Positions 3,059 to 43,797 are shown, counted from the whole stretch's first letter. The stretch is 56,839 bases of DNA, filler included, from Sluysia triapertura (GCA_046118255.1; 4 parts of 4 records of this genome joined end to end with filler, not necessarily neighbours in it); one strand, 5' to 3'. Translations and numbers: made by a program. The notes: generated by a model not told the origin, from the letters alone.

Positions 3059-6000
3059 GAAATCGTACATTTATTCTGTTGGGAAAGTCACAGCAATTTG
3101 TTAATTAACTTAATTAGATTAATTTAAATATGCTTTGTAAAACAACTTTGGATTAAAATATATTGTTAAAAACTACGCATTAAATGAAAGATGCTGTAAC
3201 ATATCATTGATATAAAAATGAGTATTTCACGATACAAATTAACGGAGATAATGAAAGAAATTATTATTTTAAATAATGAATTACATATTACAAAATAATC
3301 GAATAAACTCGAAAAACATAGAATTAATCTTTGTTAAAGAATGATTCTAAATTTAATATTTATTTAATAAAAAATAGAAGCTTAAACAAATGCTAAAAAA
3401 GACAATGGCAAATTAATTTATATAATTAATCAATCGCAAATAAATTAAAAAGCTTTTTAAAGTAAGATATTAAATTATACCTCATCCATAATTTTCATAT
3501 GCTTTTTTTCCTACAGATTATCATTTTTTCAGATATTACAATGAATTCCTGGAAGATAGATCTAGGACAAAAATCCATTACATATTAAAAAATAGTCACA
3601 TTTTATTTAAAAAGATTTGCCATTTTTCTTAATAAATAAAAATAAATATTCACTACAATAAATCAATTGAGAAGTCCTTGAGAATGTAATATATAATACT
3701 TCTGTTAGCGGTATCTTTTATGAAATTTATTACCATTATAATTAAAATCAATAATCATTAATGAATACATGAATGTAAAATTAATAATGATAATAATTAC
3801 CATTATGATTGATAATTTGAGATTTCATTCTCATGAAACATTTCTTTACGTTTATTCCTGATATTAGTATTGATTGACACACTTCATAAAACATCAATAA
3901 AAATTTAAAAAATCCAAAATTTCTTCAGAAAATATTCTATACGAAAATTTACTTAATGAACATTAAATGTAATTTTAATTTGACATTTAAAATCATAATT
4001 ATATTATAACTTCAAAATTGGTTTTATGTTCAATTTAAATTTTTATTTTCTGAATCACTTTTATTACATTAATTAGATGTGCACACAAATTATTATGAAC
4101 ATGTATTAGCACTCAATTAGCACAATAATATTCGTCGAACAGTTAAAATCAAATAAAGAAGTTTGACCTTTCAATAAATGACATACAGTTTTATGTATTA
4201 TGTGTGTGAGTTGTGAATGGCGCCAGAACATTAATTTTTATAGCCTCTTCAAGGTGATAATTTTATGCATGAAGTTGATTTCAGTTTTGTCCATATAAAT
4301 GTGTATGTGTGTGTTATACTTGAAGTGGACTTTCTGGTTGAGTAAAACGTGACATAATAATACAGACAAGCACGCTTTATTTACATAGTTGATTTTTTGA
4401 TGATTTATAACCGTTTTATAAAAAGTGGACGAAAAAATATTTTTAGGTATAAAATCAATTAACTTGATTATTTTGGAAGAATATTAGCATTAATATTCTT
4501 AGGGTTGGTTAATCGAGCTATTCTTAAGATTTCTCTTACGTATTAATGTTAATGTGTAAGACAAAGTGAAATATTACTAATTAGATTTTATTCGACAATA
4601 TTTACAACTATTTTCTTATAGTACGTATATAAACAATAAAAATTAAATAAAATAAAATAAATAATTACGAATTGCATGTTTTTAATTTGTAGAAAACAAA
4701 ATTACAAAATGTTTTAGATTGTTTTAAGAAACTCACAAATACGTATTAATGAATTCCTACATGAATATAATGCTCCCAGTACTGCTATTTGTCTGTCTTT
4801 TTTAATGTGTTTTAACTCTGTTTATTTAAAATGTTTTCTTCTGATAAAATTAAAAACCCAAGACGAATATCCGAGTTTCAACTATAACTTTTGCAAGTAA
4901 ACCAAGTATATTGTTTCAGAAATTCCATACCTTTGTTTTCCCTGTTTCAAAATTCAGTTTAATTTGATTTCGAATTCAGAATATTTATATCCTTGAGTTC
5001 TTTTTTAAGAATTAGCTTCCTTAACAATTATTAACTTGACATTTAAGGAAATCAAAAACTAATTATTTATACACAAATAATCAATTGTGACAATTAAGAT
5101 GTTTAAGAAAAACACTTATAGACTTAAGGTCCTTATTGAAATAATTATTAAATTTATATGACTTAAGATCGAGATAAAGTTTTGGGTGCTTAAATCATAA
5201 GTTGGTGAGTGTATTATTGCTTTATTGAAGTCACACTAACTAATAAAATATAACAAAACAAAGTTTCATAAATTTTCTTTTGAACTGTTGATGATATAGA
5301 ATTGTGAATTGCATTGTTAATTATTAGATATTAACTATTTTATAGCATTTGAACATGAAGATTTTAACATAAGAAGGATTAATATAATTAATTACAATAT
5401 ATTTCAAAATGTCTTGTAATATTATCTTCAACATTATTATTGATATTTTTATTTATTTAAGGTCATTTAACTCAAGTTTGTTTCTGATTTATTTACCTTT
5501 AGTGAAATCTTTTCTCATAATATGCGTATTTATACATACCTTAGTTATTATTTTCAAGCTTTCGCGATGATTTATAATTCATTTTATTATTTAGGTCTTT
5601 ATCTTTTTTAGGTATTATCTTCTTTGCTTTCAATACTACAAAATAAGTCAATAAATTCTTCATTTAAATCCGTTAAACGAATTTTTTAAATTTTGTTGCA
5701 TATTTGATTAATAAAACAATTACCCAATCATGAGAGTAAACATGACGATAAGTTCTTTTATAACACAAAAGCTCATTCTTTATTAATAATTTAAATGGAA
5801 GTAGTAAACCTAAAATAATAAGTGAGGTTGAATGACACTTAATTGATCTAGCGAGTTTAGGATAAATGGCTTGATTTCTAATGTCGGGGCTATTACCAAA
5901 AAATTCTTCTTGATTGATTATTTAAATGATTGTTATATTTTATAACTATTTTTTTAATTATTGCCAATGTTAATGATAATAAATAATACTAAATAATAAT

Positions 6001-23933: not shown

Positions 23934-24940
23934 AATTTATTGCTTAAAGAATCAATAGTCTTTTTGTTTATAAAGTAAACTACTAACGGAATAACTATAC
24001 CACCACCAATGAAGTTACCTATAAATGCAGGAAGTAGGTTAAATCCCAAAAAGTAAGCAACTGTAATTCCACTAATATGCTCACCATTACTAATTGATTT
24101 CCCAACAGTAAATACATCTACTCAAAAAATAAAAGAATTAGCCACAACGTGTTGAAATCCTGCAACACAGAAACCAAAAATTGCTATAAATATTAGAAAT
24201 ATTGCAGCAATTGCGCTTTCACTAGCATATGTTAAATATAAAGAACCACCAACTAGAATATTACAAAATATAGCTGAAAATAAACAATTTAAGAAAGTAA
24301 CACCCATAGTCTGGCCACTAACATTCTTATTAGCTGCCAAATCATTACCAATTAATCCTAGCTTATGCAAAATCATTTGAAAAGATTCAAACCCATAAGT
24401 TCCATTTGCAATTTGGCCATTAACCAAGTTAAACATAGCACCAGTTAAAAGAATAGCAACAGCTGTTAAAAAGCAACCAACAAAATTTCCAAAAAACATC
24501 AACATTAAATTTTTTGTAAATGATGAAGCAGAGACATTTTTCTTTAAAACATTTAAAAATCCTACACAATTAGATGTATAAAGACCACCACCAATAAAGG
24601 TAATAAGTAAAATACCAATAGGGAAAACAGCCCCAAATATTACTTGTCTAACTCCATTACCTGTGACTTGGCTTATAGCCGTCATAGCAACAATATAACC
24701 TAATGAAATGAAAATTCCACCAAGAATACCCTCTATTATTGTTTTTAATGCTTTATTATTAGATTTTTGCATTGAAGCTTTATAGCTACCAATGGCTGCT
24801 CTTTCATAAAAATAATAATTTTTGTTTTCATTAAAGTTATTATTTTTTTCAATGATGGCTTTTTCTTCTTGAAATTTTTTTAAAACTTCTTCATTACTTT
24901 TTTTCTTAAAAAACAAATTCCTAATTTTTACTGAAATCAT
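23934..24940 (-). CDS. Formate/nitrite transporter (FNT) family channel, 3' end truncated by the contig edge
   Basis: FPIGILL..GGGLYTSN, GNFVG, AIFCNILV, GFQHVVANSF; reading TGA (24122-24124) as Trp continues to FIGNFIGGG. Confidence 0.9.
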
Positions 24941-25010
24941 TAATAGCCTACTAACCCTAAACACATAATAAGAATATTTTAAGTAATTTCATTAAAATTA
25001 AAAAAATTTT

Positions 25011-25643
25011 TTATAAATAACTTTTTAATTCATGATTATTAATCATAATATCTTCTAATATTCCTATTCTTCCATGACCAGGGCATATAATATTATCTTT
25101 TGAAAAAGTATTACAAAATTTTATTAAGCTATTTTTCATTTGTATATCATTTCCACCAATTAAATCGGTTCTTCCTACCCCATCATAAAATAGTAAATCA
25201 CCTGTGAATATAAAGTTGTTATATTGATAACAAACTAGTCCCGGAACGTGACCTGGGAATAAAAAAACACTTAAATTAAAAACACCAAATGTTAGTTTCA
25301 AATCATTAAAAAATACAATATGTTTTTCATCAATTATAATTTCTTGTTTGAAGAATTTACTTAGATTATTTTTAATTAATGTTGATTTATCTTTTTTATG
25401 AATATAAATTTTTACATTATGTTTTATAGCTAGTTTTATTCCATCTCCAATATGATCGAAGTGGCCATGAGTTAATAATATAGCCCGCAATTTTAAATTA
25501 TTTTTATTTAAAAAATCTTCACACTTTGAAGAATTTCAGCTAATATCAATTATTAAAGCTTGGCCATTTTTATGAAGAATATAGGTATTGTTATCAATAT
25601 AATTATGGTTAAAACAAACAATTTCCTTCGAAACTATATTCAT
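25011..25643 (-). CDS. MBL-fold metallo-hydrolase (glyoxalase II-like)
   Basis: LLTHGHFDHIG, PGHVPG, FTGD, PGHG; N-terminus extends through one TGA to the ATG at 25643. Confidence 0.9.
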
Positions 25644-25645
25644 AA

Positions 25646-26098
25646 CTATTTTTTACCTTTTTTATATGAATTTATTTCCTTGATTAAAGAAGAAGATATT
25701 TTATCTAAATCATAATTAGATATAAAATATACCGTTTCAATATCATTGCATAATTCATGGTTAGCAAAAGCCAATTCCATTTCATAATTTAAATCCTTAT
25801 TATTATTTCTTAGGCCCCTAACAATATAATTAGCTTTTAATCTCTTTGCACATTCAACTGTTAAGTCATCTTCATTTGTAATGACATAAATATTATTTTT
25901 TAATTTATTTTGTTCTTGTAATTGTTTAATTATTAAAGAAATATTTTTTAATCTGAAATCTATATCAATAGCACTTGGTTTATTTTTATTTTTTGTAACT
26001 ACAACATATAAAGAATCAAATAATTTAGATGCTTTGTTAATTATATTTATATGTCCTTCGTGCAACGGATCAAAACTTCCTGGGAATATAGCTACCAT
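25646..26098 (-). CDS. coaD: Phosphopantetheine adenylyltransferase
   Basis: AIFPGSFDPLHEGH, IVRGLR, YEMELAFAN, ISSSLIKEI. Confidence 0.95.
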   Translation of the reverse strand: MVAIFPGSFDPLHEGHINIINKASKLFDSLYVVVTKNKNKPSAIDIDFRLKNISLIIKQLQEQNKLKNNIYVITNEDDLTVECAKRLKANYIVRGLRNNNKDLNYEMELAFANHELCNDIETVYFISNYDLDKISSSLIKEINSYKKGKK

Positions 26099-26294
26099 TA
26101 AATTTCCTTTAAGTATTAATAAAATCTTATTTATTTATATTTTAATTTATCTTTTAAATTTAAATAATACTAAAAACATTAAAAAGCCACAATTTTTTAA
26201 AAACATACATTTAATAAACTTACGCTAAAAAATTATTTTTCCTTTTTTTTGAATAAGTTCTCAACTAATATTTCTTTTAAATTTATTATTTTAG

Positions 26295-26303
26295 TGCTAT
26301 AAT
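26295..26303 (+). promoter_or_regulatory. Extended -10 promoter for the rpmH operon
   Basis: TGCTATAAT about 40 nt upstream of rpmH; SD-like GAAAGGT at 26333-26339. Confidence 0.6.
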
Positions 26304-26343
26304 TTCCTTTTGTTAAATAAAATTAATAGTATGAAAGGTAATT

Positions 26344-26481
26344 ATGAAAAGAACATGACAACCAAATAAGTCAAAAACTAAAAAAACACATGGTTTTTTA
26401 GTTAGAATGTCTTCTAAAAAAGGACAACAAGTTCTTGCTAGACGAAGAGCTAAAGGAAGAGATAAAATAGCTGTTCAGTAA
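26344..26481 (+). CDS. rpmH: 50S ribosomal protein L34
   Basis: MKRT(W=TGA)[34 protein letters not shown]; absent from the ORF track. Confidence 0.95.
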
Positions 26482-26492
26482 TATACTATTAA

Positions 26493-26846
26493 ATGAAAAA
26501 ATATGTTTTAAAAAAAAACGAAGACTTTCAAAAAATCCTTAAAAAGGGATATAAATTTAAAAATGATTATTTTTGTGTTTATATTCAAAAAAATCAATAT
26601 GATCATCCTAGATTTGGCATTTCAGTACCCAAAAGTAAATGTAAAAAAGCATTTACAAGAAATAAGATTAAAAGATGAACAAGATTAGTAATTATGGAAA
26701 GTTTAAATACCCAAATTAATTTAGATTTTGTGGTAATGATTGTTTTTAAAAATTTTAAAGAAGTAACATATAGTAAATTTAGAGAAAAATTACTTATTAT
26801 TTTGTTAAAATTGAATAATATGAAAGGGCATGATGCTAAAAAATAA
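26493..26846 (+). CDS. rnpA: Ribonuclease P protein component
   Basis: LKKNEDFQ, RFGISVPK, KAFTRNKIKRW (RNR-like motif); lies directly after rpmH. Confidence 0.92.
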
Positions 26847-27906
26847 TTTATCAGTAAATAAGTTCATTAAACAATCACATATGAACTATAAAGCTGAAAA
26901 AAAATTATGAAAAGAAATATTTAAATGACTAAAGCGCATACTTTTTTTATTTTTATTTGGAATGGCTTTAATAGGATGTTTTCAACAATTGATTGATAAC
27001 ACAATTCAAACTAGCAATTTTGCAGGTTCTGGTTCTGAAATATGCGGATGAGGCGGAAGTTGTATTAATGGTCATAATGTAGCTCCCGGGGGTAATAGTG
27101 AATATGATTATTATCCGATCATAACATGAGGCGATGCTTGATCTCATGGGCCATTTTATGCTTTATTTGTTTACCCATTTTCTTTATTTTTATCTTTATT
27201 AATCCATTCGATGAACTCACAAATTGGTTTGGGTGGGGGGATTATAGTAGCTATATTGATTTTAGTTCTTTTGATTAGAACAGTAACACTTTTATTTACA
27301 ATTCCACAACTAAAAATGCAAGCTCACATGCAAACCCTTCAAGTTAAGGTTGCTGAGATTAAATCACGTTATGGGCAAAACAAAACCTCACAAGATAAAC
27401 AAAAAATGCAAATGGAAATAATGAATTTTTATAAAAAAAATAACTTTAAGCCAATGGCATTATTTGCTTCAACTTTTGTTACATTACCTTTCTTTTATGC
27501 GATGTATCGAAGTACAGCGATGGTTAGGGAAGTTAAACAAGGAACACTTGGTCCAATAGATTTTAATGTAACTATATTGTCAGAAGTGTTTAGCTTACAT
27601 CAATGGATATATTTAGTTCCTTTCTTTATAGTTGTGCCTACTCAAATTCTAGCTATGAAAATTCAAAATATATTGAATTATAAAAAGAATAAGATGATGG
27701 ATGAAAAAGCACGGAAGCAATATAAGAAAACGCAATTGATGTTTACAATAATGATGATTGTTTTCGTCTTTATTTCTATAAATGTTGCGTTTTCACTAAC
27801 AGTTTATTGATTCTTCTCAAACATTTACACTATCATTCAATCAATAGCTATTTTTTACTATCAAAAAAATTCTAAAAATAAAGAAATGCGGTTAAAGGCC
27901 TCCTAA
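26833..27906 (+). CDS. yidC: Membrane protein insertase YidC (Mollicute type)
   Basis: ALIGCFQQ, WGDAWSHGPFYALFVYP, QKMQMEIMNFYKKNN, LPFFYAMY, VYWFFSN in code 4; synteny with rpmH-rnpA. Confidence 0.92.
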
Positions 27907-29226
27907 ATGACTTCAAGAACAATTGTGGCTTTAGCGACAGCACCTGTCAATTCAGCTTTAGCGATAATAAGGATGTCTGGACCAAACACTTTCAAAATAC
28001 TTTCATTAATATTTCAATCAAAAACAACTAAGTATTTGAATAAGCAATTTTATTATGGAAAGTTAATAGATAAAGAAAAACTAGTAGATGAGGTTATTGT
28101 CTTATGCTACAAAAACCCCAATTCTTTTACTGGGGAAGATCTAATAGAAATTATTTGTCATGGAAATATTTTAATTATTAATGACATTATTAATTTGTGT
28201 ATCAAAAATGGTGCAACTTTAGCTAAAAGAGGAGAATTTTCCGAAAAAGCATTTCTAAATGGGAAAATAAATCTTTTAAAAGCTGAGGCCATAAATAATT
28301 TGATTAATTCAAAATCAGAAATTTCTAAAAACACATCACTTAAAAATTTATTTGGTGATTCAACTAATTATTTAGAATCTATAAAAAAAGAACTACTAGA
28401 TTTGATTGCCTCAATCGAGGTAAGCATTGATTATCCAGAATATGATGAAGTAGATATTTCTAAAAGTACAATTTATAAAAATATTTTAATAATAGAGAAT
28501 CAACTTAAAGAACTAATAAATAACAATAATGTTTATAAAAATTATGAATATGGTATAAAAACTGCTATCGTTGGCAAACCAAATGTAGGCAAATCTAGCT
28601 TATTGAATGCAATGCTAAAAGAAAATAAGGCAATTGTTTCAAATATCCCCGGAACAACAAGAGATATAGTTGAAGGAGAAATTTACATTGATAACATTTT
28701 ATTAAAGATTTTAGATACGGCGGGCATTAGAAAATCAACAATTAAAAATGAAATATTGGGAATTAATAAAACAATTGAGACCATCAAAAAAGCTCAATTA
28801 ATTATTTACCTAACAGATAGAAATTTTGAAATAGAAGAATCTATTAAGCCATTTTTAAAAGATAAAGAAGTTATATATGTTCAAAACAAAAAAGATATTT
28901 ACTCAGTAAGAAACGATTTATTTTTGCCAATATCAGCTAAAAATAATGAAATAAATAATTTAATTACTAAAATAAAAAAAACGTACTCAAAAATTTATTT
29001 AGATTTTGAATCAATGCACATTTATCCAAAAGAAAAAATAGTATTCTTTGAAAAATTGATAAAACTTTTAGAACATTCAAAAGAAATGCTTTTACAAAAT
29101 ATATCTATTGAAATAATATTATTAGATATTACAGAAGGGTATAATTTATTAGAAGAAGTTATAGGTAATAAGTATCACGAAGATATAATTACCACTTTAT
29201 TTAGAAATTATTGTTTAGGGAAGTAA
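27907..29226 (+). CDS. mnmE: tRNA modification GTPase MnmE/TrmE
   Basis: TIVALAT, SFTGED, GKPNVGKSS, GTTRD, DTAG, NKKD, terminal YCLGK. Confidence 0.97.
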   Translation: MTSRTIVALATAPVNSALAIIRMSGPNTFKILSLIFQSKTTKYLNKQFYYGKLIDKEKLVDEVIVLCYKNPNSFTGEDLIEIICHGNILIINDIINLCIKNGATLAKRGEFSEKAFLNGKINLLKAEAINNLINSKSEISKNTSLKNLFGDSTNYLESIKKELLDLIASIEVSIDYPEYDEVDISKSTIYKNILIIENQLKELINNNNVYKNYEYGIKTAIVGKPNVGKSSLLNAMLKENKAIVSNIPGTTRDIVEGEIYIDNILLKILDTAGIRKSTIKNEILGINKTIETIKKAQLIIYLTDRNFEIEESIKPFLKDKEVIYVQNKKDIYSVRNDLFLPISAKNNEINNLITKIKKTYSKIYLDFESMHIYPKEKIVFFEKLIKLLEHSKEMLLQNISIEIILLDITEGYNLLEEVIGNKYHEDIITTLFRNYCLGK

Positions 29227-29227
29227 G

Positions 29228-30016
29228 ATGAAAACAGGAAATATTATTGATACACATTGCCATTTAATAAACGATATATACTCAGAAAAGTCATACAAAA
29301 TAGAAGAAGTTATTCAAGAGGCAAATAATCTAGGCGTTACAAAACTAATATCTGTTTCTTGCTCGCTTGATGAAACAACTAAAAATATTGATCTTTGTAG
29401 CATGCATAGAAATTGTTTTCCAACTGCCGGAATTCATCCTTGTTATGCACAACAAACAAAGTTATCGGAGGTCGATTCTCTGAAAAAATTAGCATCACAA
29501 GATAAGGTAATTGCTATCGGGGAATGCGGATTAGACTACTATTATGCTAAGACACCAATTGAGCAAGGTAAACAAAAATTAATATTTGAAGAACAAATTA
29601 AATTAGCAGTAGAATTAAAAAAACCCCTTATTGTGCATTGTCGTAATGCTTTTAAAGATCTAATTGAAATATTAGAAAAATATAATAAAAAAATTAAAGG
29701 GGTTATACATTGCTATACTGGTGATTTAGAATCTGCTAATAAGTTAATTTCTTTAGGATTTTATATTTCTTTTTCGGGCATAATAACCTTCAAAAACGCA
29801 TCCATCTTAGAAGATGTAGCTAAAAAAATTAGCATAGATAAAATTTTAATAGAGACTGATTCTCCATACTTAGCCCCAGAACCATATCGAGGGGAAATAA
29901 ATTTTCCAAAAAACGTTATATTTATTCTAGAAAAAATCGCCCGCCTAAAAAAAATTCCTTCACAAGAATTAACTAAGCAAATAGAGGATAATACAGCCCA
30001 ATTGTTTTATATTTAA
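29228..30016 (+). CDS. tatD: TatD family DNase
   Basis: DTHCH, GIHP, AIGECGLDY, HCR, HCY, ETDSPYLAP. Confidence 0.95.
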   Translation: MKTGNIIDTHCHLINDIYSEKSYKIEEVIQEANNLGVTKLISVSCSLDETTKNIDLCSMHRNCFPTAGIHPCYAQQTKLSEVDSLKKLASQDKVIAIGECGLDYYYAKTPIEQGKQKLIFEEQIKLAVELKKPLIVHCRNAFKDLIEILEKYNKKIKGVIHCYTGDLESANKLISLGFYISFSGIITFKNASILEDVAKKISIDKILIETDSPYLAPEPYRGEINFPKNVIFILEKIARLKKIPSQELTKQIEDNTAQLFYI

Positions 30017-30017
30017 A

Positions 30018-31628
30018 ATGAATAAAATAATAAAAATACATCCTAAAAAATCCTTAGGTCAAAATTTTTTACAAGATAAAAACATAATACAAAAAATTGT
30101 TAATCAAGTTAAAAATGAAAACAAAAAAATAGGAATTATTGAAATAGGCCCCGGCACCGGCGCTTTAACAGAGCATTTGATTGATATTGCAGAAAAGCTA
30201 GTTTTAATTGAGATAGATAAAAATTTAGTATCTATATTGAAAGATAAATACAAAGGAGAAAATGTTTTTATCTTAAATAAAGATATTTTAAAAATAAATT
30301 TAAATGATGTTGTAAATGATTATTTTAATACTAAAAATCTTGATGAAATCATAGTTATTTCTAACACTCCTTACTATATAAGTTCACTAATTTTATTTAA
30401 AATATATGCTTCATCACACCTTATTAATCGGGCAATCCTAATGATGCAAAAAGAAGTAGCTGAAAAAGTAAAAGGTGTTTTTCAAACTAAAAATTATAAT
30501 AATTTATCTATTATTTCTAATTATTATGCTAATTATAACTTTATAACAAATGTTTCTAAAAATTGTTTCTTTCCTAAACCTAAAATAGATAGCACAGTTT
30601 TTGAATTAAGATTCGATAAATTTAGAATTTTAAATCCCGAGGAAAGCTTAAATTTTGAAAAATTTTTAAGATCTTTATTTTTAAATAAAAGAAAGACTTT
30701 AGTAAATAATTTGAAGCATAATCTCCACTTTGATGAAAAAATAATCAATAAAGTTTTAAATTATTTTTTTATTGAATTAAATATTCGTTCTGAACAACTA
30801 AGTCTTAAAAAATTTTTAAAATTATTTATATTTTTTACTAATTACAAGCAAAAAAATAGTTACTTATTAAGAAGCAATTCTAAATTAACACTTGCTTTTA
30901 ATGCTTATCATAACAAGGTTGATGGTTTACATGACATTGAAGGCATTTATTACCCATGATTTAAAAACGAAGATGAAATTTTAATTAATTTTAAAAGTAA
31001 AAAAACAAGAATTTTTGTTGGCAATAGTGAATTTATTATTATCGAAAATAATATTCAACAATTACTATTAGCTTTGAAAGAAAGCAATATATTTACAGAA
31101 AATATCGAAGTTTTCATATGAAAAAATAATAACCCAGGGACAGGGTTGGCTGCTGGAAGTGGAAATTTATTTGTAGTGGCAAAAGCCATATGCGATTATT
31201 TAAAAATTGATGTATCAGAAATTAGGGACATACTTTATAAAATATCTTCTGATTCCTTGTTTTATTATCACAATTCATTAGTGTATGTGAATAATTTTGG
31301 AAAAAATTATCAACCTATAAAATCTAAAATACATTTATATAATTTTATTAAAGTATTTACACCCGAAAATATATACTGTAACACTAAAGAAATTTTTAAA
31401 CAATTTGATATTGATAAAACACAAGAAAATTTAAATTTTTCAGATTTAGTTAATTACTTAGAAAAAGACGATTGAAAAAATTTTGTAAAAAATACAGCAA
31501 ATGTTCTTCAATCTTCGGCCCTTAAAAATGATGAATTAAATAGCTATTATAAGAAAATATCTAAGTGTAAAGATAAAATTATTCTTTTAGGCTCAGGGTC
31601 ATCTTTTATAATTTTCAAAGATAGTTAA
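30018..31628 (+). CDS. rsmA: Fusion: 16S rRNA dimethyladenosine transferase RsmA/KsgA (N-terminal) plus IspE-like GHMP kinase (C-terminal), 536 aa in code 4
   Basis: KKSLGQNFL, EIGPGTG, NTPYYIS, FFPKPKIDS; the same frame continues with no TAA/TAG through SKLT..DGLHDIE, PGTGLAAGSGN, ISSD, LGSGSS. Confidence 0.85.
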
Positions 31629-31708
31629 ATTATTCATTAATAAAGTGGAAAATAATTTTAATAAACATATAAAATAATAGTGTGTAAAAACTATTAAAGG
31701 AAAATATT

Positions 31709-32704
31709 GTGCCCAATAATAAAGAAAAAGTTTTAAATAATATTGTCTTATTTGGTTTATCCAATTCAAAAGAATTAGCTAAAAAGGTTTCTAAAATATT
31801 AAATATCCCCACAATTGACAATACCAAAGAGTGCTTTGCCGATGGTGAAATAATTGTTAGATTTAAAGAAACAGTTCGTGGCAAAGATGTATATGTTATT
31901 CAATCAACATGCCCACCTGTTCATGATAGTATATTTGAATTGCTAATTTTTATGGATGCTTTAAAAAGAGCAAGTGCTAAATCAATAAATCTAGTAATAC
32001 CTTATTATGGTTACGCAAGACAGGATAGAAAATGTAAATCACATGAACCAATTACATCTAAATTAATAGCATCAATTTTAGAGTTATGCAAAGCTAATAA
32101 AGTTATAACTTTTGACTTACATGCTCCACAAATTGAAGGTTTTTTTAATATTCCTGTTGATAATTTAAGTGCTTTGCCTACAATATGTAATTTTATTTTG
32201 GAAAAAAAATTAGAAAATTTAATAATAGTTGCTCCTGATCAAGGCGGAGTTGTTAGAGCAAGAAGATTAGCCGAGTCATTAAATACTCCTATCGCTATAA
32301 TAGACAAGCGAAGAATTGGCAAAAATATAACCGAAGTAATGAATGTTTTGGGTGATGTCAAAGATAAAAATTGTATTTTAATAGATGACATGATTGACAC
32401 AGGTGGAACAATAATTAAGGGTTGCGAAGCATTAAAAAAACAAGGAGCTAAGTCAATTTATGTTGCTTCAACACATGCAGTTTTTAGTGGTCAAGCTGTT
32501 GAAAGATTAAAAAATTGTGAAGTTATTGATGAAGTTATTATCACAGACACCATCCCCCTATCTAAAGAAAAACATTTTTCTAAATTAAAAATAGTATCAG
32601 TTGATAAATTTTTAGCTGACGTTATAAATGCTGACATTCGTTGTCATGGTGTTGGTAAAGTTTATCGTGAGCACACAAAATCATTTTATAAAGTATGAGA
32701 TTAA
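31709..32704 (+). CDS. prs: Ribose-phosphate pyrophosphokinase
   Basis: [36 protein letters not shown]; GTG start; ends W-D-TAA in code 4. Confidence 0.97.
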
Positions 32705-33261
32705 TTGTTGGTTTAGGAAACCCAGGTCTTAATTATGTTAATACAAGACATAATGTAGGGTTTTTGTATCTTGATAATTTTGTAATTAAAAATAAGTTAA
32801 TATGAATTAATAATTTTTCTGGACAATATTGCAAAACTAAAATAAATGATCAGGATGTGATCTTATTTAAACCTGGAAATTATATGAATTTAAGTGGGCA
32901 ACCTATAAAAGAAATTACTAATTTTTTTAAAATTAAAGTAGATGAAATATTAGTTATCCAAGATGACAAAGATTTAAATATTGGAGATTTAAAAATTTCT
33001 ATTAATAGATCTGCTGCTGGGCACAATGGAATCAAAAATATTTTTGAAGTATTTCACACTCAAAACATCGCTAGAATAAGAGTGGGAATTTTAAATTCAG
33101 ATAAATTACATAATTTAAAAAATTTTGTCTTAGCTAATTTTACAAATGAAGAATTACAAAAATTAGAAAATAATATTTTTAATAAAATAACCTTGATAAT
33201 TAATGATTTTACAGTTTTATCTATTGAAAGAATTATGAATAAATATAATGCTAAAACTTAA
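32695..33261 (+). CDS. pth: Peptidyl-tRNA hydrolase
   Basis: [33 protein letters not shown]. Confidence 0.95.
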
Positions 33262-34540
33262 TAAAGAAAAAAAATACATCATTGGCGTTAGTGGCGGCCC
33301 CGACAGCATGTTTTTACTATGAAATTTAGTAAAAAACGGAATTTTAAATATAGTTGTTTGCCATGTTAATTATAATTTTCGCAAAAGTTCTTTGAATGAT
33401 GAAAATATAGTAAGAAATTTTTGTAAAAATAACAACATTAAGCTATTTGTTAAATCTCTAAAACAAGAAGATTTTAAATCAGGTAATTTTCAAAATTGAG
33501 CTAGAGAAGTTAGGTTTTCTTTTTTTAGAGAAATATATCTAAGTGAAAGGTCTGACTATTTATTAATTGCGCATACTAAAAATGATTTTATTGAAAGCTA
33601 TTTAATGCAAAAAAGAACTAGAAAAAATGTTTATTTTTTTGGTTTACCATCAAAAGGTTTTGCTTACAACATGAATATTATTAGACCTATTATTAATATT
33701 TATAAAAGTAATATTATTTCACAACTTAAAAACAACTCGATTAGTTATGGAATAGATGAAACCAACTACTTGCCAAAGTATACAAGGAATAAGATAAGAA
33801 TAGAATTAAGCAATTTATCTGCCGCAAAATTAAATGCACTACATAAAGAGGCTAAGGAATTAAATAAAGGATTTTATGATAGGTTTAAATCAATTAATAA
33901 ATTAATTTCTAAAAATAAAGTCTATAAAATAAGTAAATTTTTATCCTTAAATATTTTAGACCAACTTTTTTTCTTATCTTATATATCTAAAGGGCTATTA
34001 ACATCAAAAATAATCACAAATAATTTGATTAATATATTAAAGAGTAAGCAACACCCAAGCTATGTTTTTAATTATAAAAATTTTTATATCTATAAAATGT
34101 ATGATGTTTTTTGCATTATTCTTAAAACAGATAAGAGCCCACCAAATCATCATTATAAGTATGATGTTATAGCCCTTGATAAGTTAACTAAATTAGAATT
34201 TCAAGAAGCATCTTTTTTAAAAATATCTACACATAAAATAAAAAATGGTATAGAATATATTATTCCAAGTAAAAACATTATTGTAACTAACTATGGAAAT
34301 TTAAACTATAATTTTAAAAATATAGTTAAAAGTTATAAATTTTCAAATGCTAAAATACCACTTTTTTTGAGAGAAATGTGACCAGTATTTTGGGATAATT
34401 ATGAAAAGAAAATAATTTTGATACCATATGTTTATTATGATAGGGCAAATTTAAATAATAAAATTATATTAAAGATTTGAATAAAGAAAGATTATTATGA
34501 GTGAATTTCAAGAGATAGTATACACTTCAGAGCAAATTAA
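33248..34540 (+). CDS. tilS: tRNA(Ile)-lysidine synthetase
   Basis: IGVSGGPDSM PP-loop, HVNYNFR, AREVRF, AHTKND, DETN..YTRNKIR; in code 4 it overlaps hpt by 44 nt. Confidence 0.92.
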
Positions 34541-35015
34541 AGAAAGAATAGTTGAAATAGGACAAGAATTAAATTTAGAAAATAAAAATTTTCTATGTGT
34601 GCCTATTTTAAAAGGTGCTTTTAATTTTGCTGCTGACTTGATAAAACAATTAAAAAATATTCAATTAGACTTTATCATGGTTAGTTCTTATGCAGGGAAA
34701 AAACATAAAAGACCAGAGGATTTTAATATCGTATTGGATTTAAAAGTAAACATTGAAAATGAAGATATATTATTGATTGAGGACATTATCGATTCAGGTT
34801 CTAGTATGTATAAAATTATTGATCACCTATCACTTAAAAAACCAAAATCAATAACATTAGTTTCACTTTTGGAAAGAGAAGGCAAATCTCATAATTTTAA
34901 TGTTGATAAATATATTGTCGGCTTTAAAGTAAAAGAAGGATTTTTAGTTGGATACGGATTAGATTTTCAAGAACAATATCGTAATCTTAACTACGTCGCA
35001 ATTTTAAAAAAATAA
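34497..35015 (+). CDS. hpt: Hypoxanthine phosphoribosyltransferase
   Basis: ILKGAFNF, LLIEDIIDSG, FLVGYGLDFQEQYRNL. Confidence 0.95.
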   Translation: MSEFQEIVYTSEQIKERIVEIGQELNLENKNFLCVPILKGAFNFAADLIKQLKNIQLDFIMVSSYAGKKHKRPEDFNIVLDLKVNIENEDILLIEDIIDSGSSMYKIIDHLSLKKPKSITLVSLLEREGKSHNFNVDKYIVGFKVKEGFLVGYGLDFQEQYRNLNYVAILKK

Positions 35016-35048
35016 GTGATAGAATAAATTAATATATTATAGGTAAAG

Positions 35049-37127
35049 ATGAACAATAAGAATTCGAACAATAAAGTAAATAACCCAAACAACAATACAG
35101 GATGACAAAAATTTTTAAAATGATTGCCATACTTAATAGTTGTAGCTATTATCATAGTTATTATTTATTTTATTTTCTTTTATAGTCCTTACAAATCAAT
35201 GTCAATAGAAGATTTTATAAACTTATTTAATGGTAGTGGCAATGTCATAAAATCTTGAAAAGCTGTCTCGGATGGTGTGACAATAACAGTATATTTAACA
35301 TATGTAGATTCCCACGGTGTAACGCATATGGTGACCACAAGTTTGTTTGCTAATTCTCCTCAATATGCCCAGTTATTTGGATGACCAGATGACAAAGGGC
35401 AATGATCTAAAGGTCTTTTAGATCTAAAATTAGGTGGATTTCAATCTGCAAGTAATGGTAATGTCTGAGTTTCATTACTAATTAATTTGTTACCAATAAT
35501 AATAATTGTAATTATATGTATCTTTATGTTTAGATCAATGTCTAAAGGAAAAGGTTTAGATTTTGGATTAGGTAAAAACAAAGCTCAAATTGTTAATTCT
35601 AATTTAACTTTTTCAGATGTTGCTGGTTATAAAGAAGAAAAAAAGGAATTAGAGGAAATTGTTTCCTTTTTAAAAGATCCTTCAAAATATAAATCTATGG
35701 GGATAAGACTTCCTAAAGGTATTATGCTTGTTGGTCCTTCCGGAACAGGTAAAACAATGTTAGCTAAAGCAACAGCCGGCGAAGCAAATGTACCATTTAT
35801 GCTAATTAGTGGTTCAGATTTTGTAGAAATGTTTGTGGGTCTTGGTGCATCTAGAGTTAGAGACATGTTTAAAGCAGCTAGAAAAGTTGCCCCATGTATT
35901 ATCTTTATTGATGAAATTGATACAGTTGGCCGTCATAGAGGTGCCGGAATGGGCGGAGGAAATGACGAAAGAGAGCAAACTTTAAACCAATTACTAGTTG
36001 AACTAGATGGCTTTGAAGAAAACAAAGGCGTTATAGTTATGGCTGCAACCAATAGATTAGATGTGATTGATAATGCTTTATTAAGACCTGGAAGATTTGA
36101 TAGACAGGTTTTAGTTAATTTACCAAATTTAGAAGAACGTATTCAAATTTTTAAAGTCCATTTAAGAAATAAAAATTACGATCCAAAAGTTAGCTTAGAA
36201 GATTTAGCTAGAAGAACTGCAGGATTTAGTGGCGCACAAATTGAAAATATGATAAACGAAGCCGCTATTTTATCAATTCGTCTAAACAAAACTGTTATTT
36301 CACAACATGAATTTGATGAAGGTTTTGATAGGGCGATTGCTGGTTTAGCAAAAGTTACAAAAGTATACACTCCAAAAGAGAAAAAATTAATTGCTTATCA
36401 TGAATCTGGTCATGCATTAATTGGAGTGTTGTGTGAAAGTGCTGAAAAAGTTCAAAAAGTTACAATTATTCCTAGAGGTCAAGCTGGAGGATATACTCTT
36501 TCTACCCCATTAGAAGATACTTCCTTATCGTCTAAAGCTGATTTATTAACTAGAGTTAAAGTAACGCTTGGCGGAAGAGCAGCAGAACATTTAATTTACG
36601 GTATCGAGAATATAACTACAGGAGCCAGCAATGATTTAACTGTTGTTACAAACATAGTTAAAAAAATGGTTATTGAATTGGGAATGAGTGATGTTGGTCT
36701 TGTAAATTATAGTTCATTTGGAAATAATAGCTATCAAGAATTTTTTCAACAAGGTAACCAAAATTTAGTATCAGATCTTAAAGTTAATGAAATTAACAAT
36801 GCAATTGAAAAAATAGTTTCTGAACAATATGCGGCAGCTTATAAATTATTAAAAGATAATAAAGAATATTTGGATTTAATGGCTGAAGCATTAATTATTT
36901 ATGAAACTATCCTAGATAAAGATATTGATTATATTTTAAAAAATAAAAAAATTCCTGAAAAAACAGTAGATGAATTAATACACAAAAACTTAGTAGTTAC
37001 AGAAAATAAAGATAGAAAAGTAAAAGCATCTTTTAAAAAGAAAAAAGATGAAAATGTTAATATAAATGAAAACTCAGATGAAGCTAAGGATAAAAAAGAG
37101 ATTAAAATTTCAGACATCGAAAAATAA
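35049..37127 (+). CDS. ftsH: ATP-dependent zinc metalloprotease FtsH
   Basis: Two N-terminal TM segments (through several TGA-Trp codons), [29 protein letters not shown]. Confidence 0.97.
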
Positions 37128-37147
37128 TTTTTTATAAAGGAAATAAA

Positions 37148-38281
37148 ATGAGAAATCATAAATTAGATAAATCACCCATTGAAACACCATCAAATAAAAA
37201 ACCAACAGATAATAAAATTAAAGTTGAAATTATTAAAAGAGATGCCCCTTTAAAAAATAATCAAGAACTTTCTAAAACTTTACATACTGAATTAAATAAA
37301 ATTAATGTACGAGCTAAGAAACAAAAGCAACCTAAAAAACCAAAACCATCTTTAACAAGACAAGAGCTTAAAAGTCAAAAAATTGAAGCTCATAAAAATA
37401 AGTTATTAATTAAAAAAATGCAAAAAGAAGAGTATAAAAAACTAAAAGAAGCTAGAGTTTTGCAAAAAGATAACGAAAAGAAAATTAAATTTATTAAGAA
37501 TAAATACTCTAACAAAATTATTAAAGGCGAAATCATTTCTACTTCTTCAATATCGCCCAATTTACATAAAGATGTTATACAACTAAAAGATGTTAAAAAA
37601 TCTTATCTTCTTGGTTCTAATCCGTACCATGTATTAAAAGGGATAACTTTAAATATTCCTTGAGGAAGCTTTGTTGTTATTTTAGGTCCTTCTGGATCAG
37701 GTAAAACGACACTTTTAAACGTGATTAGTGGTTTAGACACAGTTGATTCGGGAGATATTTTTGTTGACGGATACAACATAGCTTTGTTAAAAGATAAGCA
37801 TTTAACAGAATTTAGAAGACAAAAAATAGGCTTTGTTTTTCAACAATATAATTTATTACCTCATTTAACAGCAAAAGAAAATGTTGAAGTTGGGGCAAAT
37901 TTAAATAAATCAAGCAATAATAAGCTAACAATTAATGAGATTTTTAAAATGATTTGAATGGAAGATCATATTTACAAATTTCCTTATCAATTATCTGGTG
38001 GGCAACAACAAAGAATAAGTATCGCAAGAGCCCTTGCAAAACAACCATCAATTCTTTTCTGTGATGAACCAACAGGTGCGCTTGATGAAACAACAGGTAG
38101 AATAGTTCTTGATGTTTTAGTAAATATTAATAAAAAAAGCAAAACAACAATTATTCTTGTTACTCACAACCCTAATATTGCGATGATATCAGACATAGTA
38201 ATTAAAATAGCTAACGGAGAAATTGTAGAGTTTAATCAAAACAAAGAAAAACTTTCACCTAAGGAAATTAACTGAGCTTAA
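37148..38281 (+). CDS. ABC transporter ATP-binding protein (LolD/MacB type) with a long Lys-rich N-terminal extension
   Basis: Three track ORFs join through TGA: GPSGSGKT, GFVFQQYNL, LSGGQQQR, DEPTGALD, VTHN. Confidence 0.93.
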
Positions 38282-38282
38282 A

Positions 38283-41171
38283 ATGAAATTTCTCTTACTC
38301 AAAAATTCAATCAAGAGTATAAAGAATCAACTCATTCAGTTTTTTTGCTGCACCATACTTATTTTTGCCGGAGTAGCAATTTTTTCTGCTATTAAACTAG
38401 GTATTGGCAATGTCCAAAGTGTTTTTAATTTCATAAATAATGAAACCAAAATGCATCAATTTTCATTAAATACCGGAATAAATTACAAAAAACTAAATTA
38501 TACTGACCCAAATCTTAATGAATATTGCCATTCTTCTAGCAATAGTAATCAAGCATGTGGGCAAGAAGTATTAAATTATTTTCAAAAACAATATAGTTTT
38601 TCAGCAACAAATCTACAAGCAGATAATTTTCAAATTGTTACTTCTAATAGTGTTCGATTTTATCAAATTTTAAATTTACCTAGTTCACTAGATCGTGCAT
38701 TTTACACAAATACCAATAAAAATTTTCAATTAATAAGCGATATATCTGCTGGTAATTGCATAGTTAACTATTCTTGAGCCCTATCTAATAAAAAAAGCAT
38801 TGGCGATAGCATAAACTTCATGAATAAAAGTTATGTTATTGAGGGTTTCGGAATATCATCATTAAATGCTTACCCCATTATACCGACTAGTCCTTTCCCA
38901 GAAGATAAGGATAATTGTTTCATTATTTTAAATAATTCAGATTGAAATAACTTAGTTAATACTACTCAAGGCTCTATAAGTAAACGATACATAGGGAGAT
39001 TCGATTCTAAATTATCAGATAACCAAATTCATAATAATATAACTAATTTAAATAATAGTTTCATTAATTTAGTAACGAATCCTGACAAAATACCAAATAA
39101 TTCTAATTTCATAAACGAAACTTATACTAATCCTGGTTATAAGGGAGAAATGAATATTTTTGCAATTGTTATTTCGATAAGAAATAATAATTTATTAGCC
39201 ATTATTTTTATAGCAATTATTATAATTGCTAGTTTAATTATCATTTTTATTGTTCTTAAAAAAAGAATTGAAGACTCAAGAAAACAAATCGGGATTTTAA
39301 AATCATTAGGTTATAAAAATAATGAAATTGCTTGATCATATACAATGTTTACGTGCTCCTGTTGTATTGTTGGGGGAGTTTTAGGATTCATTATTGGATT
39401 CTTTTCACAAACTCTTGTGTCATCATTTTCACAAATATCGTTTCCTTTGCCACTATATTATTTTAATGCTCCCATTTTTTTACTTTCAATATTTTTACCA
39501 TTAATAATTTTGACTATTTTTAGTTATATTATTTCTTTAAAATTAATTCAAAAAAATACAATAACCCTAATAAGAGGGGATTTTCAATATAAGGCAACTT
39601 TTATTCAAAGGAAAGTATCACAAATTGTAAAAAATTGAAAATTTAACCAAAAATTTTATATGACCATGGCTTCTAAATCAATTGGGAAGATGGGAGTAAT
39701 AATGATAACAATCATAATTACCTCATTTTTAACAGTATTTACTTTAACTGCCGGGAATACGGCCGCTTTTTTCCTATCTAAAGTTAAAAATTCTATGTTA
39801 TATAACTATCAGTATAATTTTAATAGAACAGCTAGTTTAAGGGGCGAGTATCAAAATCTACCCAACATATGCCTCGACCCTTTAAACTCAAAAAAAGCTG
39901 AATGTCAATTCAATACAACCCAGTATCCAACTAATAATAATTTTGCTATAGCTTCTCCAACAATCCTTAATTCGGCAAATATAGATACAGTTTTAAAGCA
40001 AATTAAAAATGGATATAAAAATTCAGACCTAAATGGATATTATCTTGTCTTAAATAAAGAGGAGAAAAATCAACTAATTATTCAAATAGATGAATATATT
40101 AAAGACCCAAGTTATAGTATTCAGACTAGAAATTTATTATCAAGAATAAAAATATTTTTAAACACTATTAGTATAACTGGCTCTGATTCAATAACTCTTC
40201 CAATAGGCTTTACAGTTTATAACCCAAACACCGATTATTCATTTTTTTCTTTTAATAAAGGAGATATGAAGAATGGAATTCAATTAACTTCTATAAATAA
40301 TAATGTTGCAAAATTTAATCCTTTATTTACAGAATCTTTAATAGATAGTTTAAATAATTTTAAACCCGAGGCTAATAATGTTATACCGCTTTATATAACA
40401 TCATTTATATCTAATCAAGAAAATTTAAAAGTCGGCTCTTATGTTGATTTAGATGATACATACAAAGGCGAAATTATTGGTGTTATAGATGACAATTTAC
40501 AAAAACAAGAATTTACCACAAATAAGTGATTATCAGTATTATTCACACAAGATAAAGCCAATCCAAATATTTATGCGCCATGAATTACATTAGACTCATT
40601 AAATAGGAATTTATACAATAATTCTATATTTAGCCAAGCACAAGAGTTTACTTACCCTAATCAATTTTTTCCGTTATTTCTAGATAGTAATAAAAATCTT
40701 AATTTTTCTTTGCTAAACTTTGTTGATATTAGAAAATTATTTACCCAAATAGGGGCAAAAATACATCAAATAGATAATATCATATGAATATTTATTTCAT
40801 TTGCAACATTTGTAAACCTAATAATTATAATTTCTATTTCAACCTTAATAATTGCTGAAAATAGAGTATTTATTTCGATAATGAAAGTTTTGGGATACCG
40901 TGATAGAGAAATATCTTACTTATTTACAAAAATATATGCTCCTTTTATAATCATAGGTTTTGCTCTTGCTATACCAATAGTATTTGGAATAAGCATATAT
41001 ATAACAAATTCGTTATCATCTTCGCTAAATATGAACTTTTCATTTATTCCAAGCATTTGACAATTTTTAATAGGCTTTGCTATAATTACTTTACTAATGC
41101 TTATTAGCTATAAAACAGGAGAAGAGTTGATTAAAAGAATCGGTTATCTTAAAACAATTAACTCGGAGTAA
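38283..41171 (+). CDS. ABC transporter permease, FtsX-like, two-repeat (962 aa)
   Basis: Single frame in code 4; two FtsX signatures, KQIGILKSLGY and ISIMKVLGY. Confidence 0.88.
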
Positions 41172-41177
41172 TAATAA

Positions 41178-42545
41178 ATGAATAAAATTTTTAAAAATAT
41201 GTTTGTTTCTGCTTTTAAGCATAAAATCCAGTTATTTTGCTTAATTATTTTAACTACTTTAGCTTCGGCATTTTTTATTGGTACTAATTCGGCAATTAAT
41301 AGTGTTAATAAAGAAAATATTAAAATTCAAAGAGATTCTGGTGCTCATCAATTTATTGTTGATCTAGGATCTTCGTCAGTAGGAAAAATATTAACAATGG
41401 ATAATGATTTTGAATCTAAAATTACCCCTGACTTAGTAAGTCTTGCTAATTCATGATCTCAGCAAAAACTTCCTAGCAATATTAAATTAACACTTTCTAT
41501 TAGAGATGTAAGAGAAACATTTACAGGTGAAAAATTATTTAAAATAATGCCATATATTCCTTCTGAAACATCAGGAAATTACTTTAACAATGTTGATCAA
41601 CCAGTAATAGTTGCGGGTAGAGCCCCTCAAAATAAAAATGAAATTATGCTTTCTCCTTTTTATGCCAATGCTAATGGAGTAAAATTAAATAGCAAGATAA
41701 CTATTCAATCACTACAATACACAGTTGTAGGTTATGCCACTAGTTATGACATGTATTTTATGCAATTTGATCAACTAAATGTTGTTCCAGATGGCAAAAA
41801 CAATGCCGTTGTTTATTGTTATAAAGATGCATATACAACCAATGGTGGGAGCAATTTTTCTGTTAATTCTAAGGATAGAGAAATATACATGGTTGGAAGA
41901 GCTATTTACACAAATACGGTTAGCACAAGCTATGTTGGCGATCCTTATCCATATTTTAATTATGAAAGTTTCTTTAACAGCATAGGATTATCCTCAAAGG
42001 GTGTAATTCAACCTTCCTATTCTGGCTATAACTTCAACTATTTAGCTGGTGGAAAAATTTATAATCTTAATGACAAGAATTATACATTTTTTAAAAGATC
42101 AAATTCTTTTAATGCCTTTGTTGCCCAAGCTGAATATATTTTAATAGGGTTTATAATTATAATTTTGGTGGTATCTATATTTATTATTTTAATTATTTCC
42201 AAAAAACGCGTGGAACAAGATGCTAAACAAATAGGAATCTTCAAGGCAAATGGATATCGAAATAATGAAATTTGTTTTGCATATTTAATCTTTACTATTT
42301 TAGCTAGCATAATAGGGAGCCTTATAGGATTGGTATTATCATTTTTAACTTATTATTTTGTGTATTCAACATTTTTTACATTTTTTTCGTTGCCAGTAAG
42401 TAGTATTTCCTATAACATAGGTGACATAATAGGTATTTGGTTATATACTACATTAGTAATAATAGGCATAACATCGTTCATTACTTATTCATTTTTATAC
42501 TTAAATGTTAGAAAAAATGTAATATCAATAATAACAAAAAGCTAA
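41178..42545 (+). CDS. ABC transporter permease, FtsX-like, N-terminal-half protein (455 aa)
   Basis: GRAPQNKNEI, KQIGIFKANGY; ends at TAA 42543-42545. Confidence 0.85.
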
Positions 42546-42565
42546 TATAAAGGAGGCGAAAATAC

Positions 42566-43797
42566 ATGAAGAAAAATAAAAGAAAATTATTTAATATTAA
42601 TCGAGACTTAGGCAGATTTAATGTTTTTTCTAAGTTTACTAAAGAAAGAAAACTTAAAAAAACACTTTCAAAAGAACAATGAAATGAACTTCAATATAAA
42701 AAAATTTCTTATTCTAGAAATATAGCATCAATTAGATACACAATTGCTAAAAAATCTTGATTTAGAATTTCTATAGTCGGAATTAGTTTATTAGCCTCAT
42801 CAATTTTAATTTTAGTTTCGTGTATTTTGCCATCAGCACTATTAAATTTTAAGCAAGGATTGCTTAAAAGTTTTGGAGAATATAATTCTTATAGTGAATA
42901 TAAAAATAATCCTTTAAATGTCCCTGTTCCTAAATGAAACATGCAGCAACCAGTTACAGGAAATGAAAATAATGATAATTCATATGGAGGATTTGACCCT
43001 TTAAATAACAATCATATTGGAACTGATAATAGATATGATTATTTTGATCCAAATGATAAAGACCAAACAGATATGAATTATAATCTTTTCACATCAGGTG
43101 GAGGGTTTCAAAATTTTTCTTTTATGGGTTATCTGGGGGGAGCAGCCATTAGTTCAACATGGGTAAATGGATTAAGAACTGACCCAAAATTAAATTCTTC
43201 AGATGTTGGAAAAATTATATGTAATTTATTAGGAGTGCCTTACCAAAATGGATGAACAGGAGCAGATTGCGTTTTGCAAATGATTAATGAAAATGCACCT
43301 TCATACATGAGACAACAATTATTTGGGAATTCAAACCCAAATTATTATTTATCATTTGGTAAGGTAGCTTATCAAATGTTAACCGATAATTTATATACAT
43401 ATGTTCAAGGAAAAACAAATGATGGTATAGGAACTGAGATTTGAGGCTTGAATAATAATGGTAATTATGGAGTGGATGATGGTAAGGGGAATAATTTAAT
43501 ATCTCAACTTTATGGTCAAATTAATAAATTTCAAAATTCTGATATATTTCCTTGTGTAGTTAATAAAACACTATTTAATAGGTTATATCTAGGGAAACAG
43601 CTATCAATTGATAAAACAACCGGAAATTATACTTTTTCTTATAAGGTGCCTTATAAATTAGCGGAAGTTCGAGGAGAGGATGGAAATTGATATATAGCTA
43701 ACCCAGATAAGTTTTTTTGAACTAATGGTATGAATGGTGAGTCAGTATATTATCAATGAAAAAACTCTGCCGTATCTAATTTTAATGGAATAGCTAC
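42566..43797 (+). CDS. Probable C-terminal-half permease protein (partial; runs off the contig)
   Basis: Strong SD AAGGAGG (42550-42556), ATG at 42566, basic leader, one TM segment, then a large Asn/Gly-rich extracellular domain; open to the contig end in code 4. Confidence 0.75.

Follow-up and report, generated by a model that had tools for sequence, protein, structure and literature searches.

Positions 23,934 to 43,797 of a 56,839-nucleotide stretch of the Sluysia triapertura assembly GCA_046118255.1 (the whole stretch is the window) form a piece that is wholly bacterial. Very probably, the piece is a stretch of the free-standing chromosome of a not yet described Mollicute (phylum Mycoplasmatota), which reads UGA as Trp and belongs to the clade of the mollicute of the snail Biomphalaria glabrata; as a contig it entered the assembly along with the DNA of the sequenced animal. 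The genetic code of the piece, its gene content, its synteny with other genomes, its clade membership and its lack of close relatives carry this reading. The habits of these relatives, together with a reduced, AT-rich and densely coding genome, suggest that the bacterium may live in or on the sequenced animal, as the first-pass annotation had supposed for an invertebrate host, possibly a flatworm.

UGA is a Trp codon on the piece. Genes read under translation table 4 (code 4) contain 46 in-frame TGA codons versus 4 TGG codons, and the complete genes end in TAA (n = 15) or TAG (n = 1) and in no other codon, as in a code-4 Mollicute, in which UGA is Trp and only UAA and UAG are stops. We scored the residues that stand opposite each TGA when the code-4 translations are aligned with homologues from 78 loci of code-11 organisms. 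The TGA at codon 327 of yidC is positioned opposite W in 33 of 33 homologues, and the TGA at codon 5 of rpmH is positioned opposite F, Y or W in 34 of 35, in agreement with the first-pass annotation, which had singled out the MKRTW start of rpmH and a YW in YidC as Trp-compatible positions of in-frame TGA. Because TGA faces W far above background (38 of 113 cells, background 0.4%; F in 22 and Y in 17) and G in only 4 of the 113 cells, UGA is read as Trp, neither as a stop nor as Gly. Translation of UGA as Gly (code 25, Gracilibacteria and Absconditabacteria) is thus ruled out by the 4 G against 38 W, and the best homologues are from Mollicutes and Bacilli; translation as a stop is rejected on the W and other aromatic residues that face TGA in code-11 homologues. 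In addition, the Pfam matches of the pieces obtained under table 11 begin or end in mid-profile exactly at TGA codons: the Pth match begins at profile position 54 and that of TilS at 118, and ABC_tran is matched in two parts, 30–80 and 100–136.

The piece comprises 19,864 bases with no N and a GC content of 21–31%. Read under table 11, it yields 33 open reading frames of at least 60 amino acids (aa), which correspond to broken genes; read under table 4, it yields 18 contiguous genes that occupy 97.5% of the piece, and their lengths agree with those of collinear relatives. The packed, intact and, in code 4, full-length bacterial genes described in the first-pass annotation are therefore real. 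A Pfam search confirms the gene families along the whole piece, and the GC content at third codon positions is 17% across the code-4 genes. Low GC, dense coding and a Bacillota-type gene order are what is expected of code-4 Mollicutes. The Shine–Dalgarno sites that had also been reported stand only in part: a weak motif of the AAGG/GGAG type precedes about 11 of the 18 starts. ARAGORN finds no tRNA on the piece, and an Rfam search finds no rRNA or other Rfam family there. The genes, with their coordinates in the window, are as follows.

23934..24940, minus strand: FNT (formate/nitrite transporter), start at 24940 and 3′ end cut by the left edge; PF01226 at E = 2.8e-38, 1 in-frame TGA
25011..25643, minus strand: metallo-beta-lactamase-fold (MBL) hydrolase; PF00753 at E = 2e-17 on the table-11 piece, 1 in-frame TGA
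25646..26098, minus strand: coaD-like cytidylyltransferase (phosphopantetheine adenylyltransferase type); PF01467 at E = 3.7e-19, motif FPGSFDPLHEGH seen in the translation
26344..26481, plus strand: rpmH (ribosomal protein L34), beginning MKRTW with TGA as codon 5; 77% identity with the Biomphalaria-type copy
26493..26846, plus strand: rnpA (RNase P protein); collinear with the PF00825 genes of the two nearest relatives described below (L081 and L084), 34–38% identity
26830..27906, plus strand: yidC membrane insertase; PF02096, gene model with about 6 in-frame TGA, top library match 54%
27907..29226, plus strand: mnmE tRNA-modification GTPase; Pfam TrmE_N, MnmE_helical and MMR_HSR1, best public matches 43–46%
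29228..30016, plus strand: tatD-family hydrolase; PF01026 at E = 4.9e-81
30018..31628, plus strand: in-frame fusion of ksgA/rsmA with an IspE-like GHMP kinase, 536 aa, 3 in-frame TGA; Pfam RrnaAD at E = 1e-56
31709..32704, plus strand: prs (ribose-phosphate pyrophosphokinase), GTG start provisional; Pribosyltran_N and Pribosyl_synth, 63% identity with L081 and 59% with L084
32695..33261, plus strand: pth (peptidyl-tRNA hydrolase); PF01195, table-11 piece beginning at profile position 54, after a TGA
33248..34540, plus strand: tilS (tRNA-Ile lysidine synthetase); PF01171, piece from profile position 118, about 5 in-frame TGA, SGGPDS PP-loop in the code-4 translation
34497..35015, plus strand: hpt (hypoxanthine phosphoribosyltransferase); PF00156 at E = 4.2e-18, 45–49% identity with relatives
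35049..37127, plus strand: ftsH (AAA+ zinc metalloprotease); Pfam AAA and Peptidase_M41, 6 TGA in the N-terminal membrane part, best public matches 58–60%
37148..38281, plus strand: ABC transporter ATPase (MacB/FtsE type); ABC_tran split over two table-11 pieces, 69% identity with L081
38283..41171, plus strand: large FtsX-type ABC permease, 962 aa; collinear with a 969-aa PF02687 gene of L081, 29% identity over 991 columns
41178..42545, plus strand: second FtsX-type permease, 455 aa; PF02687 at E = 1.3e-11, L081 orthologue also 455 aa
42566..43797, plus strand: third FtsX-type permease, N-terminal part, cut by the right edge; 37% identity with the first 392 aa of an 814-aa PF02687 gene of L081, 8 in-frame TGA

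Two of these genes have features of their own. MnmE (27907–29226, 439 aa) contains no Trp codon, neither TGA nor TGG, which makes it the only long gene left intact by either code. At its N terminus, the ABC ATPase is extended by about 140 aa (37148–37570) of Lys-rich, low-complexity sequence without a Pfam match; the orthologue of the snail mollicute described below lacks this extension, and that of Mycoplasma sp. SG1, a more distant relative, is likewise long (405 aa).

The gene order of the piece is collinear with that of two other genomes, bearing out the Bacillota-type genes claimed at first pass. The first is a contig (L081) of the metagenome-assembled genome (MAG) GCA_050632985.1. This MAG is identified as the mollicute of Biomphalaria glabrata, because its FtsH (P0122) agrees at 480 of 481 positions with a UniRef entry catalogued as 'Biomphalaria glabrata' (P0123). 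It is therefore the mollicute noted in the B. glabrata snail genome project ('Mycoplasma sp. ex Biomphalaria glabrata', CP013128 / GCA_001484045; Adema et al. 2017), and it too was found as bacterial sequence within an animal genome assembly. P0123 itself (846 aa) is a eukaryotic gene model that begins after the last N-terminal TGA and continues into unrelated sequence.

The snail mollicute reads UGA as Trp, has a GC content of 27% in the compared stretch, and has 15 genes, rpmH through the third FtsX permease, arranged exactly as in the piece. Like the piece, it has a KsgA::IspE-like fusion (505 aa, with RrnaAD and GHMP-kinase domains) and no hexapeptide-repeat (GlmU-like) gene before prs, and it is sister or near-sister to the piece in all trees. 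It differs from the piece in sequence, with a length-weighted amino-acid identity of 42.8% over 16 genes (range 29%–77%) and nucleotide alignment in patches only, at 63–80%, and its ABC ATPase has 303 aa, against 377 aa with the Lys-rich extension in the piece. The second genome is contig Ga0265365_1002556 of JGI metagenome 3300024581 (L084), collinear from rpmH to ftsH over 11 genes, with a fused KsgA::IspE-like gene of 520 aa and an MnmE of 439 aa as in the piece. Its average amino-acid identity to the piece is 46.5% over the 11 genes and its GC content is 22%. Upstream of rpmH it has a divergent dnaA, where the piece instead has coaD, the MBL hydrolase and the FNT transporter. L081 and L084 are 45.5% identical in amino-acid sequence to each other, and the three lineages are thus about equally distant from one another.

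In all three genomes, ksgA is fused to a kinase gene (30018–31628, 536 aa, in the window; 3764–5281, 505 aa, in L081; 7042–8604, 520 aa, in L084), and under code 4 neither TAA nor TAG interrupts the frame from one half to the other in the piece. The kinase half scores 1.8e-7 and 31 bits against the NCBIfam IspE models, whose curated cut-off is 321, and the kinase sequences of relatives (P0241 and P0246) likewise fall under the NCBIfam cut-off, while the IspE structure 2v2q of the PDB matches the kinase half at 2.7e-6. We label the kinase half 'IspE-like' rather than IspE because it is divergent and falls below curated family cut-offs; its fold is predicted to be IspE-like and its enzymatic identity is putative. 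In a syntenic locus of a further relative (L088, 5936–7517), ksgA and the IspE-like kinase are two adjacent genes, and ksgA is separate in another (L089) too. Judged from this distribution, the fusion appears to be a synapomorphy of a sub-clade made up of the piece, L081 and L084, and we propose to recognize that sub-clade by the ksgA–ispE fusion, which is found in the three genomes, together with loss of the hexapeptide-repeat gene before prs.

The fusion can be placed in the gene order of Bacillota. We take the order on the Bacillus subtilis map to be tatD/yabD, ksgA, ispE, glmU, prs, pth, tilS, hprT and ftsH, with other genes between, and the orders rpmH-rnpA-yidC-mnmE and tilS-hpt-ftsH of the piece are those of Bacillota on the same map. 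The piece carries an ancestral Bacillota block rpmH-rnpA-yidC-mnmE-tatD-ksgA-ispE-prs-pth-tilS-hpt-ftsH in compacted form. Loss of intervening genes and of the ksgA stop codon in the sub-clade has left a single open reading frame that joins the 16S rRNA dimethyltransferase to the IspE-like GHMP kinase. The compacted block is followed by the MacB-like ABC ATPase and the three FtsX permeases, and the whole consists of common housekeeping genes, as expected of a bacterium with a reduced genome. The fusion may also point to a joint function of the orphan kinase and KsgA.

Parts of the same block occur in more distant genomes. Mycoplasma sp. SG1 (CP076852), possibly, to judge by its name, the scorpion 'SG1' mollicute of PMC6326461, falls in the same wider clade and has tatD followed further on by prs-pth-tilS-hpt-ftsH, the ABC ATPase, three FtsX permeases and a tRNA synthetase. 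It differs from the piece in its average amino-acid identity of about 38%, in the position of rpmH-rnpA-yidC, which lie elsewhere, beside dnaA, and in a hexapeptide-repeat gene before prs, with no KsgA fusion seen in the block. L088 (Logan SRR26974992) is syntenic, with separate ksgA and GHMP-kinase genes and a hexapeptide-repeat gene before prs; L089 (Logan ERR13998666) is syntenic, with a separate ksgA followed by a gene without a Pfam match; and L092 (Logan SRR33343644) is syntenic, with ksgA followed by mnmG. Only rnpA-yidC is in common with a 541-kb contig of a distant relative (L090; ENA ERZ25073755). Upstream of rnpA-yidC in that contig (1–9381) lie six tandem genes of about 495–545 aa with essentially no Pfam match, which may be a paralogous surface-protein array.

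The surroundings of rpmH also differ among these genomes. dnaA lies divergently just upstream of rpmH in L084 (1930–3237), L089 (7023–8327) and a further locus, L091 (7857–9269), in contrast to the corresponding part of the window (23934–26343). A replication origin beside rpmH was considered for the piece and rejected: dnaA is absent from the piece, no cluster of DnaA boxes is found in the 26.1–26.3 kb spacer with one mismatch allowed, and GC skew changes sign at about 25.9 kb, just where the coding strand switches.

The trees place the piece among the code-4 Mollicutes, apart from the Acholeplasma, Anaeroplasma and Izemoplasma lineages, and next to the snail mollicute. Specifically, an FtsH tree (LG+C20) joins the piece with the snail mollicute pair with a support of 100, and an MnmE tree (133 rows) joins it with L081 and L084 with a support of 100; the first-pass annotation had proposed trees of these two proteins, and both set the piece within the UGA = Trp Mollicutes near the snail mollicute. 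The same group of three has a support of 99 in a quick concatenated tree of 10 genes (LG+C20) and of 98/99 in a careful one of 9 genes and 2611 columns, computed without ksgA (LG+G4). All four trees thus agree on monophyly with the B. glabrata mollicute. In the 9-gene tree, a wider clade that also contains two Spiroplasma-like MAGs, SG1, L088 and L089 has a support of 100/100, and Acholeplasmataceae, Anaeroplasma and Izemoplasmatales fall outside it. This result, together with the 46 TGA versus 4 TGG codons, confirms the earlier assignment to a Mollicute with UGA as Trp that is neither an Acholeplasma nor a phytoplasma. Sampling in the trees is thin for the hominis group (MnmE tree only) and lacks both the pneumoniae group and Ca. 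Argiopiplasma dusa with the Vazella pourtalesii MAGs, whose sequences are not among the identified matches.

A clade that fits this placement has been described. Ca. Argiopiplasma dusa, a spider symbiont with a genome of 575 kb and 24% GC, groups with the Biomphalaria mollicute and two MAGs from glass sponges in a deep-branching and long-branched Mycoplasmatota clade (PMC13599016, 2026). Members of the clade are small (0.58–0.68 Mb), have about 24% GC and are host-associated; the clade is possibly a new order, its members are reported as specific, even vertically transmitted symbionts, and further members in other host phyla have been predicted (PMC13599016). The piece fits the description of this clade and attaches to its Biomphalaria member; its relation to Ca. 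Argiopiplasma dusa and the Vazella MAGs runs only through the Biomphalaria genome.

As a rule of thumb, members of one genus share an average amino-acid identity of about 65%. By this rule, the piece, L081 and L084 would each represent at least a separate genus, and the piece is taken as a separate lineage, at the level of a genus or deeper, because its average amino-acid identity to its relatives is only about 43–47%. The first-pass annotation had raised the question of a new lineage. On these identities the lineage appears separate but not isolated, as the clade that holds the Biomphalaria mollicute has already been published; what the sequence comparisons support is a new lineage within a published, thinly sampled clade, and the clade itself is not new.

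Searches of large protein collections agree with this distance. We searched a word index of 5.8 billion proteins with MnmE, an FtsH piece and a KsgA piece (30018–30956), and 1.84 billion cluster representatives exhaustively by HMMER with the YidC core; the queries were table-11 pieces or intact open reading frames, and code-4 translations were used in local comparisons. These searches find no match above 54–60% amino-acid identity in either collection. Among the 5.8 billion proteins, the best matches of MnmE reach 43–46%, with Spiroplasma and Bacilli MAGs on top, the best match of the KsgA piece, the query that brought up the fused gene of L084, reaches 46%, and the FtsH piece reaches 58% with a MAG named 'Mycoplasma sp.' and 60% with the UniRef protein filed under Biomphalaria glabrata. 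The exhaustive search with the YidC core gives 54% and 52%, followed by 47%, 45%, 42% and 40%, and only 8 of the 1.84 billion representatives match at E<1e-30; the 54% and 52% matches are, by their lengths, probably copies of L081 and L084. Of the lower matches, three come from the syntenic loci L088, L089 and L092 and a fourth from L090. With top identities of 43–60%, the piece has no described close relative, as had been claimed.

Several other matches from these comparisons fall outside this group. An MnmE alignment searched against genome contigs (tblastn) gave, among the matches listed, mostly non-Mollicute Bacillota, and Metamycoplasma spumans and 'Mycoplasmataceae AD185' as the only Mollicutes, because tblastn under code 11 penalises code-4 genomes. 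'Mycoplasmataceae AD185' was rejected as a relative: its gene order shows no synteny with the piece, and its match to MnmE is split between frames. Two genomes with high-scoring KsgA matches (L085 and L086) were also rejected, being Spiroplasma-like genomes with MreB and another gene order. FtsH-like proteins of two ENA contigs of about 10 kb (P0121 and P0124) score 808 and 574 bits against the FtsH piece, yet in the FtsH tree they lie close to the root on a very long branch; P0121 has 860 aa and many extra P-loop family matches.

Three other origins of the piece were also weighed. The most durable of them is that the piece comes from a real undescribed bacterium that lives elsewhere, in prey or gut content, in an intermediate host (a mollusc, for example, in the case of a parasitic flatworm), in culture water or in a co-cultured organism. 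We regard this as unlikely, at a level that still deserves attention: the nearest identified relative is a snail-associated mollicute, the other relatives come from unrelated samples and hosts (PMC13599016), and no independent host individual stands behind the association, the sequence being present in one run only. Should the sequenced animal parasitise molluscs or prey on them, one may speculate that the bacterium belongs to the mollusc. An average identity of about 43% indicates that it is not the B. glabrata mollicute itself, and members of the clade are known as specific, even vertically transmitted symbionts (PMC13599016); neither point is direct evidence against such an origin.

Lateral transfer into the nuclear genome of the host is very improbable. 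The piece does sit in an animal assembly, and a very recent insert would look like a bacterial contig by sequence alone, but both of its ends fall inside bacterial genes with no host flank, its 18 intact genes with 97.5% coding density show no frameshifts or decay, its expression would need 46 UGA = Trp readings that nuclear translation does not supply, and its gene order matches that of free-living genome assemblies perfectly. Contamination by a Mycoplasma or Acholeplasma known from cell culture or the laboratory can be set aside almost entirely: mycoplasmas often contaminate sequencing projects, but the common contaminants have all been sequenced and would match at near 100%, UGA = Trp excludes Acholeplasma, the nearest relatives that could be identified come from an invertebrate and a metagenome, and the best identities found, 43–60%, are far from the near-identity that the first-pass annotation had named as fatal to its proposal.

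A contig of an undescribed mollicute, putatively resident in or on the sequenced animal, remains the reading that we prefer, and some points weigh against it or against its details. With neither rRNA nor tRNA on the piece, there is no 16S placement. The outgroups of the trees are patchy, many rows are less than 30% filled, and the pneumoniae group is missing; with such outgroups, the trees give no firm position of the clade within Mollicutes and no firm branching order among the piece, L081 and L084. Ca. Argiopiplasma dusa or a Vazella sponge MAG could be closer to the piece than the snail mollicute is. Fast evolution of symbionts inflates divergence, which makes the estimate of rank soft. Finally, a search of public sequencing runs finds the sequence in one run only, probably the source, so that no independent sample supports the host association.

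A more far-reaching reading is possible, and we hold it only tentatively. The bacterium may represent a new lineage, at a level from genus to family, of the deep-branching snail/spider/sponge mollicute clade, and may live as a specific symbiont, possibly passed on vertically, in an animal phylum from which the clade has no record. On the same reading, the KsgA fusion would mark a sub-clade and, as a Rosetta-stone fusion, would hint at a shared role of KsgA and the orphan IspE-like kinase, which is kept by Bacillota and Mollicutes that lack the methylerythritol phosphate (MEP) pathway, in maturing the small ribosomal subunit.

For the animal assembly, the finding means that code-4 contigs are to be removed or flagged, as bacterial genes will otherwise be filed as animal proteins; such misfiling is already real, since the FtsH of the snail mollicute stands in UniRef under Biomphalaria glabrata. 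For the bacteria, the clade is known from a handful of long-branched genomes and its placement is unsettled (PMC13599016), and an extra lineage at about 45% average identity would break these long branches and help to place it. If the bacterium is host-specific, it would add a new host group to a symbiosis that extends across snail, spider, sponge and possibly scorpion.

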